64,000 nt of DNA from Ylistrum balloti (lineage: Eukaryota). The first letter of the stretch is position 1. Each line of letters begins with the position of its first letter. Below, piece by piece: positions 42,101-48,715 of the stretch. Below the pieces are notes generated by a model. That model saw only the letters and a program-made list of their open reading frames with translations. It did not search any database and had not been told where the DNA came from. The translations under genes were made by a program, and so were the position numbers. The stretch is taken from contig NW_026782376.1 in assembly GCF_031769215.1 (NCBI RefSeq), positions 1,364,001 to 1,428,000 on the forward strand. Direction: 5' to 3'.

Positions 42101-45100
42101 GATCAGAAAATCCGGCGAATTTAAATGCAGTGACGAGAAAGCACAGCTGTAATTGGTCAAAACTAGAACAATATATTATCACAGGAAAAGTTATATTAAC
42201 AATAGCTTTAATATAGGATTCTATCAAGTTAATAAATTCCTATATACTTGTTTCTGCTTTTTTTGACTAAAAGTATATAACCATCAACAGTAACGAAGCA
42301 TGAAGATGTTGTTGGTGCTATTTGCTTCATGTGGCGTTGGCGTTGCTCCGATAAAATATATTTATATAATTTGTTATATTGATTACTTGTTATACCAATT
42401 ACATGTTATGTGAATTATTTGTTATGTGAATTATTTGTTATGTGAATTATTTGTTATGTGAATTATTTGTTATATTAATTACGTTGATTATAGATTACGC
42501 CTTTACACCGTTACCCATGCTGATATACAGGACCATTGGCGGAATATTCGATTTCTACATGTTTCTCGGACCGGAACCGGAAAACGTTATTCAGCAATAC
42601 ACAGGGGTAATTACTATATAATATTGCATCAAGAGGTTTCAGAATTGAAATCATCTCCCTATTCAAGGGTGACTATAATTGCGACTAAAAGCTACAGTTG
42701 AAATTTGTTAAATGAAATTAATGCGAAAATAGAATGACTCGCAGTTTATGGAAGTAAAACTGAACCTTACCTTTCTTTCATCCTTTCCCACCACTCATTA
42801 TTAAATTGAGAAATTAAGCTAAATTTACTATAGTTTCATGAAAAATTACCTTGAATAATAAAATTCGAGTTCGAACAACGATGGTTGTTGTTGGTATATA
42901 TTATATTATTTGTTTATTTCTCCCCAACTTTCCATATACTGGCTGTTAAACTTACTACATTACTAAGTACAAATGACAATTGTAATTCAATATCGCAGGT
43001 GATAGGCAGACCAATGATGCCACCATATTGGGCCCTAGGATTTCAACTGTGTCGTTATGGTTACGAAAATATCTCAAATTTGCAAGCGGCTGTGGAAAGA
43101 ACTATAACTGCAAAGATCCCGTTTGTAAGTGTTTGATTGTCACTTACTCTGTGTATTATTGCTTAGCCAGTATTCAAATAAAAATGTAATTTCAGTTTTT
43201 TAATTTTTGCATGACACGAAAGGGTGAATGATTTATCCAACGAAACTGAACTTTGAATGTTTTAAGCCTGCGTCGAAAGACATAATCAATTTTCCTTGTG
43301 CATAAAATGATAATGAAAAGAAATTGTTTGATAACACGAACAATACAGAGCGATAGACCAAGTGAATTTTGTTCTAGTCTGAATGACATGAAGACTTAAG
43401 AATTCATTGGAATTCTGAATGTCCTAAGAAAGAGTCTAGAGATTTCGTCTTAATATATACCGACAAAATCCGAAGTATTACACATATGTTATTCCTTCTG
43501 CATATGATAATGATAATAAAAGAATATTATTTACACCAAGGATGTGCAGTACGGCGACATAGACCATATGGACGAACAGAAGGACTTTACAGTTGATCAG
43601 AACAACTTCGGTGGACTGAAGGAATATTTCCACGGATTGCGTAACAATGGCATGAAAACTATAATTATACTGGTTAGTGATTACTTCGTTACTGCTGGAT
43701 GTGAAATAACAAATAGCATGAAATGCTTCAGCTCATAGATTTTAAAAAGTGAAACCAATATATCATTATGAACACATATTTTAAATACACGTATATCCCT
43801 TGTATGTCTGCAAAAAATGAAAACAAAAATCATTCAACTGATCAAAATTACTATTAATCTCATTATTTGTTGTTCAAATACAACATGACATATCAGTTCG
43901 AAAATCAAAGTTGACTCTTAAGCATATTGTTATTTCAATATTAACGGGGAGACAAAATAAGAGTGAAACTTGACATTATCGATCTTGTTATTTTCTAACA
44001 TCTTTCTTATTTAACAGGATCCGTGTCTGTTGGCTAATAACACATACAATCCTTATCAGAAGATGAGTGAACAGGATGGGTTCGTCAAATGGCCTACTAA
44101 TTACACTATACCAAAGGACAGTTCAGATGAAAATGGAGCGCTTCTTGGCTATGTGAGTAATCTTAATCACATTTGGTCCTTTGATCTTTCAATAAATTCA
44201 ATGGAATGGACATTTTTGCCCATAAACATATATATATTGTGTTTGTGTATGTATATAAGTATCTGTTTGACGAGTAAAAGTTTTAAAATTCAAAACCCCA
44301 AAGTGATATCTGAACATTTGACCATTTCCTATGCATCGCTATTATTAATTACGGAGCATCATAGAAATGGCTACAATTTTTTAAACAATTATAATCTAAT
44401 AGTTTATGTATACCAATTACCTTAAACATTATAAAATCGTTTTAAAAACATATCCAATTAAAAAGCTTGAATATTTGTAATAGCGTAGTACTTAATGATG
44501 TAATTTTTTCACATATTTGCAACAAAATGACAACATGAAAATTTGTGCTTTTGACCATTTCTTGTTTATAACTAGGTGTGGCCCAATGGAAAAGTGGTGT
44601 TTCCCGACTTCTTCAAAGCAAGTACACAGGACGTATGGAAACATCTCATTACCAATCACTCAGAGGAAATTCCGTTTGATGGTCTATGGATAGACATGAA
44701 CGAACCGGCAAATTTTGGAACCAACGAAGAGCGTCCTTGGAATTGGCCGGCTAATACGTCAGACTGGAGCTTAAAATGTATAGTTGGAGATAAATATGAT
44801 GATCCGCCTTATAGATCTATGGCGGCGTTTCAGTCGGATAACGATCAGAGGTTAAACAGAATATCAGAGAAGACGATTTGTATGGTAGCCAGGCAAGGCG
44901 AAAAGGACATCTATCGTCATTATGATGTCCACAGTTTGTATGGCTGGAGTCAGTCAGAGTCAACACTATATGGTCTACAGCAAACACACCGTGGCAAACG
45001 GGGTCTCGTGATTTCTAGGTCAACCTTTCCTGGAAGTGGCCAATATGTTGGACATTGGCTAGGGGATAACTCGGCGGACTGGGATCACTTGAGATTGTCC

Positions 45101-48100: not shown

Positions 48101-48715
48101 CAAACCACCTTATCCATAGATACACAATTCATGTGGGGAAGAGCACTCATGATAACCCCAGTTTTACATGAAGGTAGAATCAAATTAGACGTTTATTTTC
48201 CAGATGGTCGCTGGTTTGACTATTATTCAGGTTTAGAAGTAAATAGCTCCTCTTCTTTCCAGACTGTTCAGGCACCTCGTGATTTTATTCCACTTTTTGT
48301 GTACGGCGGCAATATCCTGGCAACACAACTCGCGGCTAATACTACTTTGTATAGTAGGCGTAACCCAATGGGTTTACTTGTAGTATTGAATGAACATGGA
48401 TCAGCAGAAGGAGATCTCTTTTGGGATGATGGGAAATCTACTGACACAGTTGAAAACAATCAATATTACCTCCTGTCCTTTTCGTTTAAGTCAAATAATC
48501 TTTCTATAACCGTAGATAGAAAACCACAAAATCCTGGCGACTTTGCTGAACTTTTTATCAGCAACATAACAATTTACGGCGCAAACGACTGGAAAACAGT
48601 CAACCTAAACAACGGATTTCATAGCGATTTTACTTATGACATTCGTCTGAATGTTTTCTATGTTAAAAACTTGAAGTCAGCTCTAAAGGATAACTTTGTA
48701 TTATTTCTATCATAA
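24195..48715 (+). CDS. Triple-module GH31 alpha-glucosidase, sucrase-isomaltase/maltase-glucoamylase-like, type II membrane anchored; 31 coding exons, about 2,742 aa
   Basis: Module 1 exons: 24195-24647, 25925-26073, 26588-26762, 26999-27095, 29915-30027, 30279-30404, 31171-31302, 31721-31852, 32188-32304, 32603-32729, 33378-33537, 33847-33980, 34205-34239, 34457-34576, 35003-35151, 35822-35906, 36719-36775, 36893-37020, 37131-37231, 37441-37490, 37765-37923, 38205-38263. Module 2 spliced half: 39107-39392, 39665-39819, 40527-40704, 41465-41570, 42494-42606, 42999-43124, 43541-43672, 44018-44152. Terminal exon: 44576-48715. Total 8229 nt, phases consistent. N-terminal hydrophobic anchor ([23 protein letters not shown]). 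Each module has a trefoil-like Cys domain, [29 protein letters not shown] and [13 protein letters not shown]. Orthology among SI/MGAM/GAA is unresolved, so no symbol is given. Confidence 0.92.
25300..25660. repeat. 56-bp minisatellite with an internal hairpin, in GH31 intron 1
   Basis: Unit CACAGACCCGTGTAAAGAACCCTTTCATTTTATAGAATGAAAGGGATCTTTCGTTT starts at 25383, 25439, 25495, 25551 and 25607 (last partial), with degenerate ~30-bp subunits on both sides. Confidence 0.92.
26202..26439. mobile_element. MITE related to the 1600-1805 element
   Basis: Termini TACTGTAAAAT ... ATTTTACAGT. The internal GTGGACATATGAATT...AAATCCCC segment is also present in the fragment at 50-135. Confidence 0.65.
27507..27580. 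repeat. (ACCACA)n/(AAC)n microsatellite
   Basis: Direct reading: ACCACA repeats run into a long AAC run. Confidence 0.95.
28159..28640. mobile_element. HINE/DINE-like non-autonomous Helentron-type repeat; boundaries approximate
   Basis: TTAG start, GTCCGT-type microrepeat, AACTTCTTCTCAAGAACCAC motif and GGTCAA motifs resemble, from memory, bivalve Helentron-associated elements. Not verified by search. Confidence 0.45.
29742..29804. repeat. Poly-G homopolymer, about 63 nt, intronic
   Basis: Direct reading. The length may be inflated by a sequencing artefact. Confidence 0.85.
32795..33020. mobile_element. Second MITE family (TACAGTCAAACC-type TIR)
   Basis: The left end TAGAGTCAAACCT and the reverse complement of the right end TACAGTCATACCT match at 11/13; about 226 bp, intronic. 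Confidence 0.55.
42405..42470. repeat. 16-bp tandem repeat (TTATGTGAATTATTTG) x4, intronic
   Basis: Direct reading just upstream of the 42494 acceptor. Confidence 0.85.
44576..48715 (+). CDS. Giant intronless terminal exon of the GH31 gene: catalytic/C-terminal half of module 2 plus all of module 3
   Basis: The 1379-codon ORF starts right after an acceptor (actag|GTG TGG CCC, VWP) and continues in phase 0 from the exon ending GY at 44152. WIDMNE at about 44687 and about 47393. The module 3 trefoil (ERINCYPD...CRLRGCIW) starts at about 46064. Stop at 48713-48715. Confidence 0.95.
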   Translation: MWPNGKVVFPDFFKASTQDVWKHLITNHSEEIPFDGLWIDMNEPANFGTNEERPWNWPANTSDWSLKCIVGDKYDDPPYRSMAAFQSDNDQRLNRISEKTICMVARQGEKDIYRHYDVHSLYGWSQSESTLYGLQQTHRGKRGLVISRSTFPGSGQYVGHWLGDNSADWDHLRLSVIGILELNLFGIPYIGADICGFFGTPSPELCKRWMQLGAFYTFSRNHNTKGQPDQDPAVFDESVTKASREAMETRYWLLPYLYTLFHHAHVRGSTVIRPLHHEFPTDRETYGIDTQFLWGPALLISPILEEGQEEVKIYLPHGTWYSFYTAAAVHGGQHITVQVDQNSKIPLHIRGGHVIPMQAPANNTVYSRKNSFTITVALSSDGKRTSAEGDLFLDDGEAIDSYENGNYVIAKFIASERGLKMRVRNSPTKDFTIDEIRVLGITENITVAYINGSLQHHDILHHKTNNTLIISNLALSLTEEFNIEWFTDRKAEIYELERINCYPDLDSASSVHAEDECRLRGCIWNNTFHQNIPPCHIDKARHGYVDNGTKFNNNTILKWKNQTKLFGGNIPHVEFVVLRISENILRLKYMDLEYHRYEVPVQFNNMTSRKKQDDDYRVEQGEDEHGTFFVKVIRQRTNSTVWDTSLGGFTFAEQFLQMVVKLPSKQMYGFGENRHFSFQHDFEFKRWPMFSRDNGVNWGDYANLYGVHPFYLNIEDSNGNSHGVLLLNSNAMEIELNPLPSLTYRTVGGILDFYIFLGPTPEQVIQQYTSVIGHPYLPPYWALGFQLSRYGYDNIQSMKAAVERTKSSDIPYDVQYADIDHMHERRDFTVDPVNFGDLPEYFKELQHEGIRTIIIIDPALITNASDYLPYIKGIEKDIFIKWPNGTLSPDYHEYNRTDMLGYVWPRGKVVFPDFLNPDTHAYWRDLIVSHHKNLSFDGLWIDMNEPANFGTNEERPFNWDENVKPYWTLKCPVSRWDDPPYKPKAIYGPRLSDKTLCMVAAQHKERQMHYDVHSVYGWSQTEPTLQGLREATGERGIVISRSTYPSSGRYAGHWLGDNDSAWSDLHDSVIGILEFNLFGIPYIGADICGFFGNSTSELCQRWMQLGAFYTFSRNHNTINTADQDPAYFGPAVADSSRRALVVRYTLLPYLYTLFYHAHVSGGTVIRSLAHNFPSDQTTLSIDTQFMWGRALMITPVLHEGRIKLDVYFPDGRWFDYYSGLEVNSSSSFQTVQAPRDFIPLFVYGGNILATQLAANTTLYSRRNPMGLLVVLNEHGSAEGDLFWDDGKSTDTVENNQYYLLSFSFKSNNLSITVDRKPQNPGDFAELFISNITIYGANDWKTVNLNNGFHSDFTYDIRLNVFYVKNLKSALKDNFVLFLS

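Follow-up and report, generated by a model that had tools for sequence, protein, structure and literature searches.

A 4.1-kb terminal exon, and the probable loss of 36 consecutive introns, in a three-module GH31 gene shared by scallops, oysters, pearl oysters and mussels

The stretch analysed here (the window) is a 64,000-nucleotide (nt) segment of the genome of the scallop Ylistrum balloti (NCBI RefSeq assembly GCF_031769215.1, contig NW_026782376.1, positions 1,364,001 to 1,428,000 of the forward strand), and all coordinates below are positions within it unless a contig is named. It carries a gene predicted to encode a maltase-glucoamylase/sucrase-isomaltase (MGAM/SI)-like GH31 protein with three modules, in which an intron-rich 5' part gives way to a single 4.1-kb exon that runs to the stop codon. 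Comparison with related genes supports the view that the introns of the long-exon region were ancestral and were then lost. The parts of the gene are as follows.

23981-24087, plus strand: possible exon of the 5' untranslated region; weak, from a 72% nucleotide match to positions 148-257 of Argopecten contig L010, upstream of that contig's open reading frame (ORF)
24195-48715, plus strand: coding region of the triple-GH31 gene, from spliced alignments; 81.6% identity, with 6 gap openings over 2750 columns, to the Mizuhopecten orthologue (P0121)
24195-38263, plus strand: module 1 (signal anchor, trefoil, GH31), 22 exons and 21 internal introns, the ancestral intron-rich state, from spliced alignments
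38264-39106, plus strand: junction intron between modules 1 and 2, from spliced alignments
39107-44152, plus strand: 5' part of module 2, 8 exons, with boundaries that agree with Mizuhopecten and with an Argopecten complementary DNA (cDNA)
39107-39392, 39665-39819, 40527-40704, 41465-41570, 42494-42606, 42999-43124, 43541-43672 and 44018-44152, plus strand: the exons of this part of module 2
44153-44575, plus strand: intron 30, the last of the gene, phase 0, GTGAGT...AACTAG, between GY and VWP
44576-46042, plus strand: first part of the long exon, the C-terminal half of module 2 and a linker; 13 intron sites and the module 2/3 junction intron are absent, without insertions or deletions
46043-48715, plus strand: second part of the long exon, which spans module 3 in full (trefoil, GH31 barrel, C-terminal domains) and closes with the stop codon; 22 intron sites are absent

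The gene model was made with a purpose-written splice-aware protein-to-DNA aligner and then refined against Mizuhopecten and against an Argopecten cDNA. In the spliced protein-to-genome alignment, the coding sequence consists of 31 exons separated by 30 introns and specifies 2741 amino acids (aa) with no internal stops. Introns are bounded by GT-AG in 29 of 30 cases and by GC-AG in one; the candidate for the GC donor is intron 18 (37021-37130, GCACGT), where the exon length of 128 nt equals that of Mizuhopecten. The start codon at 24195 opens the sequence MVDCSKK, as it does in Mizuhopecten and Argopecten, and the N terminus contains a hydrophobic stretch that looks, by eye, like a signal anchor, followed by three trefoil-plus-GH31 modules. 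Each of modules 1 and 2 aligns with module 3 over its full length. The motifs WIDMNE and HWLGDN, which we take from human MGAM and SI to hold the nucleophile and the acid/base region, respectively, are preserved in each of the three modules, and bivalve orthologues show no variation in them. The gene's longest intron (27096-29914) measures 2819 nt here versus 7891 nt in Mizuhopecten, and a 169-codon ORF within it (29653-30162), which has no Pfam match, overlaps the next exon.

The exon before the long exon ends GGC TAT/gtgagt at 44152 (a slash marks a splice site), and the 423-nt intron that follows ends aactag/GTGTGG. From there, a plus-strand ORF of 1379 codons (44576-48715), the sole long ORF within the gene, forms a single uninterrupted exon after GY/VWP. 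Its G+C content is 0.40-0.43, versus 0.32-0.36 in the flanks. Pfam matches on this exon (PF01055 [E = 1e-179], PF21365 and PF00088) begin with the C-terminal half of one GH31 module, C-terminal domain included; next come a trefoil domain and a complete GH31 module that likewise has a C-terminal domain. AATAAA-like signals lie past the stop codon at ~48745 and ~48765.

A first-pass annotation, made from the letters of the window, had described module 1 as containing 21 internal introns plus a junction intron, had recognised that module 2 shares the first eight intron positions and phases of module 1, and had noted that no introns follow GY/VWP although the frame and the catalytic motifs persist. 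Spliced alignments agree with each of these points: the motifs LRFK/, /..NLYG, /DVQY, /DPC and GY/VWP match as listed, the 1379-codon frame is open, and HWLGDN is found in all modules. The exon lengths of module 1 are 149, 175, 97, 113, 126, 132, 132, 117, 127, 160, 134, 35, 117, 149, 85, 57, 128, 101, 50, 159 and 59 nt, a series that matches modules of Lingula, Liolophura, Pinctada and Ruditapes. Module 2 retains eight introns, intron 30 among them, each at the position and phase of its counterpart among the first eight of module 1 (in module 3 coordinates and phase, 100/0, 152/2, 209-211/0, 244/1, 282/0, 324/0, 368/0 and 414/0), and module 3 retains none.

How many introns would have been lost? 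The earlier figure was about 35. The loss itself stands, but the count needs one correction, since an extra intron (position 50, phase 2) occurs in module 3 of Ruditapes, Liolophura and Lingula, and the ancestral count for the region is therefore 36; module 2 of bivalves is without the position-50 intron. The ancestral introns within the present long exon thus number 13 from module 2, 1 from the junction and 22 from module 3, and the whole gene has 66 ancestral intron sites, 30 retained and 36 lost. At all 13 + 22 in-module positions, the lost sites in the window align without gaps to the intron-bearing orthologue, and the residues that flank them are conserved (e.g., FDGLWI/DMNEPA).

One could argue instead that the long-exon positions never bore introns and that those of module 1 and of other taxa are gains, but nothing was found in favour of this. 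Exon maps of homologues, obtained by aligning annotated proteins to their own loci, speak to this directly. In the brachiopod Lingula (two modules, 45 exons) and the chiton Liolophura (~2.3 modules annotated, 56 exons), every module shows the series ...117, 127, ~150, 134, 35, 117, 149, 85, 57, ~128, ~95, 50, ~160, ~60. The triple-module orthologue of the heterodont clam Ruditapes philippinarum (P0131), which spans 80 kb versus 24.5 kb here, keeps 20 of 21 module 2 introns, the junction intron and 22 module 3 introns, and module 3 of Mercenaria is likewise divided into many exons. These four genera thus carry introns at long-exon positions, and positions and phases are identical in the brachiopod, the chiton, the heterodont clams and module 1; each mapped module of Lingula, Liolophura and Ruditapes has these 21-22 positions filled. 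As a separate and independent event, Ruditapes module 2 (contig L009) has precisely lost the one intron before the 35-nt microexon, which leaves a fused exon of 169 nt.

The first-pass count had assumed that module 3 arose by genomic duplication, and a tree of 61 modules settles this point. In that tree, modules 1 and modules 3 each form a clade in which every bivalve species has one member (SH-aLRT 99 and 95, respectively), while the module 2 clade is weaker (SH-aLRT 87), and module 3 of the scallop gene nests with the C-terminal modules Ruditapes_3, Mercenaria_2, Sinanodonta_2, Liolophura_3, Lingula_2, Lineus_2 and Owenia_3. Module 3 thus descends from an intron-bearing C-terminal module. 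A tree of the C-terminal halves alone keeps module 3 in the C-module clade and leaves modules 1 and 2 unseparated; heterodont modules 1 and 2 group together there, as do oyster modules 1 and 2, versus the separate clades of the full-length tree. This grouping may reflect concerted evolution between the C-terminal halves of modules 1 and 2 or simply weak signal. The conclusion of loss is independent of the C-half tree because introns occur in every intron-mapped N-type module. With module 3 inside a clade of intron-bearing C-terminal modules, the outgroup intron maps already refute the idea that the introns were never present, and we regard it as extremely improbable. The first-pass annotation had also proposed that the internal paralogues provide a before/after control; module 1 does serve this purpose, but the true control is the heterodont orthologue rather than an internal paralogue.

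An abrupt switch from exons of ~130 nt to one of 4140 nt resembles a transcript contig spliced into an assembly, and it is fair to ask whether the long exon could be an assembly artefact or cDNA contamination of this genome. Several lines of evidence argue otherwise. A protein search with the ORF recovered ORFs of 1339-1387 aa on contigs of 5-8 kb from unrelated read sets, which cluster membership and BLAST assign to Magallana gigas/angulata (P0016), to Ostrea edulis (P0019), to a mytilid (P0029, 77% identity to Mytilus trossulus) and to a relative of scallops (P0001 on contig L001, 72% identity to the window exon and ~73% to the Mizuhopecten orthologue). A Magallana contig (L002) and a mytilid contig (L003) match the window in their short upstream exons and in the positions of the introns there, and continue as one uninterrupted exon from VWP, and a second mytilid contig (L004) likewise has the long terminal exon. 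The Mizuhopecten locus (L011) has the identical 31-exon structure, with a last exon of 1387 codons, and in the Pinctada locus (L007) module 1 has all its introns and module 2 has eight, after which comes a colinear intronless stretch of 4.1 kb. The position of intron 30 is retained in the Magallana, L003, Pinctada and Mizuhopecten contigs. For Ostrea edulis, the evidence is an uninterrupted ORF of 1339 codons on a 5.4-kb contig. The Pinctada imbricata long exon (L007, 23458-27563) contains several frameshifts and stops, and its annotated protein is truncated; this reflects either a pseudogenised 3' half or indel errors in the assembly. A scan of metagenome contigs with the long-exon alignment found only relatives of <=48% identity and no bivalve orthologues.

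Transcript and divergence data point the same way. The gene product is 81.6% identical to the Mizuhopecten orthologue and ~80% identical to that of Argopecten, and an Argopecten-cluster transcript contig (L010, 8874 nt, one ORF of 2753 codons) is colinear with every exon in the window. Its positions 4312-4449 correspond to 44017-44154 and its positions 4444-8593 to 44572-48697 in a single alignment, so the junction of 44152 with 44576, for which the first-pass annotation had asked for a transcript, is used in Argopecten mRNA. Relative to Mizuhopecten, synonymous divergence (dS) is equal in exons 1-30 and exon 31 (~1.0-1.2, near saturation), and the ratio of nonsynonymous to synonymous divergence (dN/dS) is 0.07-0.09 in exons 1-30 and 0.10-0.12 in exon 31. 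Both parts are therefore constrained, under purifying selection, and share the same history. Matching structure in independent and raw-read assemblies of five other species (for Ostrea, the ORF alone), the normal intron and acceptor upstream of the long exon, and the equal dS together already refute an artefact, short of long-read confirmation in this individual, and we give that explanation next to no credence.

When did the loss occur? The long exon is shared by at least four pteriomorph orders and is not specific to this genome, so the first-pass suggestion that related bivalves would date the event leads to an ancient one. The loss is older than the divergence of Pectinida, Ostreida, Pteriida and Mytilida and younger than their split from Venerida, which places it on the stem of Pteriomorphia. 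That interval would fall in the early Palaeozoic, several hundred million years ago. The ORFs P0019 and P0029, which start at DMNEP, one ancestral exon past VWP, were considered as an intermediate state and rejected: the start reflects ORF calling at the first Met, and contig L003 is continuous from VWP.

The retained introns are the 5'-most 30 of 66 and the lost introns the 3'-most 36 of 66, both in consecutive blocks; the loss block extends to the stop codon at 48713-48715, and every retained intron lies 5' of it. If losses were independent, this exact 30/36 partition would have a probability of 1/C(66,36) = 1.8e-19. The long exon opens precisely at an ancestral phase-0 exon boundary, and no codons are added or missing there. 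Given that start, the 5' limit of the converted tract, if conversion was the route, would fall in the 117-nt exon bounded by sites 414 and 453.

Could genomic deletion or microhomology-mediated end joining have taken out the 36 introns singly or a few at a time, with the 3' block a product of selection or chance? The gene family does show precise losses of single introns, as in Ruditapes module 2 at the intron before the 35-nt microexon, and the position-50 intron is absent from module 2 of bivalves. Piecemeal deletion would nonetheless have to yield a perfect split that is vanishingly rare under independent loss, 36 exact excisions, and an identical end state and 5' boundary in all sampled pteriomorph orders; we consider it very unlikely. 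A second possibility is that the gene's own mRNA gave rise to a processed retrocopy, truncated at its 5' end, that landed in the intron after GY and captured an acceptor site, and that the displaced intron-bearing 3' half decayed; the gene would then be a retro-fusion and not a product of homologous conversion. Such an insertion would likewise yield an intronless 3' part up to the stop codon, and retroelement reverse transcriptase is available in these genomes (e.g., a Ty3/gypsy-like element at 55.1-59.9 kb of the window). An edge at the ancestral exon boundary, with codons neither gained nor missing, is predicted by homologous conversion and not by insertion of a truncated retrocopy. There is, moreover, no poly(A) tract or target-site duplication downstream of the gene, nor any GH31 relic downstream of 48715 in the window, although both absences carry little weight after hundreds of millions of years. 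We consider the retrocopy explanation very unlikely. A retroposed copy at a new locus, that is, an ordinary processed retrogene, is ruled out by the 30 upstream introns and by upstream exons common to the Mizuhopecten locus.

We therefore favour a model in which the 36 3'-most introns were lost precisely, as one contiguous block, through conversion of the gene by a cDNA in the pteriomorph stem lineage. In this model, a bivalve ancestor would have possessed an orthologue with ~66 introns; reverse transcription of the gene's spliced mRNA, from its 3' end, would have yielded a partial cDNA; and this cDNA would have recombined with the chromosomal gene, with its 5' crossover inside the 117-nt exon beginning VWP. 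The outcome would be one terminal exon of 4.1 kb with the 30 upstream introns untouched, and the time would be the pteriomorph stem (the line to scallops, oysters, pearl oysters and mussels) after the heterodont split. We hold this account to be probable as a whole, a joint judgement that takes in the mechanism, the timing given above and the reading of the gene as a functional membrane-anchored alpha-glucosidase with three GH31 modules. The reverse-transcriptase model of intron loss predicts that loss is precise, that adjacent introns are lost together and that loss is biased toward the 3' end (PMC3652778). Here, the introns are ancestral, their excision is exact, the lost introns are adjacent and the block is anchored at the 3' end. 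A cDNA intermediate is thus the most likely mechanism, which we infer from the pattern of loss; the first-pass annotation had likewise proposed in situ gene conversion by cDNA, and while the loss pattern fits that proposal, the mechanism itself is still read from the pattern.

Several considerations weigh against this account. The reverse-transcriptase model is still debated for animals (PMC3652778). A cDNA intermediate has left no direct trace: by eye, there is neither a poly(A) remnant nor a target-site duplication downstream of the stop codon, though homologous conversion predicts none, and after so long a time no evidence in the flanks would have lasted. All sampled pteriomorphs share the final state, so that one conversion and several successive 3' conversions are indistinguishable. 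Pteriomorph sampling covers Pectinida, Ostreida, Pteriida and Mytilida and leaves out Arcida and Limida, and the lower bound on the date is set by Venerida together with non-bivalve outgroups. That a single cDNA conversion removed 36 consecutive introns from a 66-intron gene, replacing 4.1 kb with mRNA-derived sequence, is a possibility that we entertain tentatively, somewhat short of an even chance.

How does this gene compare with known systems? By its sequence, it appears to be an ordinary MGAM/SI-type member of the GH31 family, and triple-module GH31 proteins of 2700-2800 aa are widespread in molluscs and also occur in the annelid Owenia. Annotated orthologues with the triple-GH31 architecture include Mizuhopecten yessoensis "sucrase-isomaltase, intestinal-like" (P0121, 2753 aa), Magallana gigas "maltase-glucoamylase" (XP_011428111), Ostrea edulis XP_048757735 and Argopecten irradians XP_069127180. 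The MGAM/SI-like genes of Ruditapes, Liolophura and Lingula share the family, the module order and the intron positions and phases of module 1, and keep their introns through the later modules. With processed and chimeric retrogenes, the scallop gene shares a coding sequence that in part has the intronless structure of a spliced mRNA; unlike processed retrogenes, it sits at its ancestral position, keeps 30 introns, lacks a poly(A) tract and target-site duplication, and has its boundary at an ancestral exon edge.

Most cases that support the reverse-transcriptase model involve one to a few introns. The loss described here conforms to mRNA-mediated intron loss, which was proposed for yeast and has been tested in mammals, Drosophila, fungi and plants (PMC3652778), in that it is precise, adjacent and strictly 3'-polar to the last intron, with 5' introns kept. 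Compared with the pairs and small clusters of the rodent cases (PMC3652778), it comprises 36 adjacent introns and 4.1 kb in one gene, and compared with other mRNA-mediated losses, it is very old and fixed in at least four bivalve orders, with a mechanism read from pattern only. A literature search found no paper that describes or interprets this exon structure, which is implicit in the public Mizuhopecten, Magallana and Ostrea annotations. The loss is thus of a known kind, namely, mRNA-mediated 3' intron loss, and represents neither a new mechanism nor a new kind of gene; its size, cleanness and age, and the combination of orthologous and paralogous controls, are unusual.

The remainder of the window contains other features. 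Downstream on the plus strand lies a long terminal repeat (LTR) retrotransposon of Ty3/gypsy type (55122-59886), with an ORF at 55467-58013 that has reverse transcriptase and RNase H domains, a second ORF at 58074-59033 with integrase zinc-binding and core domains, and flanking direct repeats of 156 nt (55122-55277 and 59731-59886). These repeats are 96% identical, and the insertion is therefore fairly young; the element is unrelated in time to the ancient intron loss, and a present-day reverse transcriptase is uninformative about that event. Tandem arrays in the intergenic DNA downstream of the gene occupy 49378-49744 (7.1 copies of 52 bp, 94% matches) and 51149-51354 (5.9 copies of 35 bp, 92% matches). 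On the minus strand, an ORF of 281 codons (2244-3086) with a DUF3429 domain (E = 3e-36) is probably either an intronless gene or a large exon that belongs to another gene. A plus-strand ATG-initiated ORF of 213 codons (51565-52206), with no Pfam match, lies just upstream of a run of N at 52698-52974.

The MGAM/SI-like gene brings together, at a large scale, all the patterns that the reverse-transcriptase model predicts, with 36 of 36 sites exact. If the introns did go in a single conversion, it may be one of the largest losses of introns in a single step from an animal gene. The long exon is also a discrete and probably irreversible marker, present in scallops, oysters, pearl oysters and mussels but not in venerid clams; disputed bivalve lineages might be placed with its help, and, if our account is correct, it would be a rare genomic change diagnostic of Pteriomorphia. 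Finally, 4.1 kb of coding sequence, followed through four orders and several hundred million years, provides an empirical zero for intron regain.

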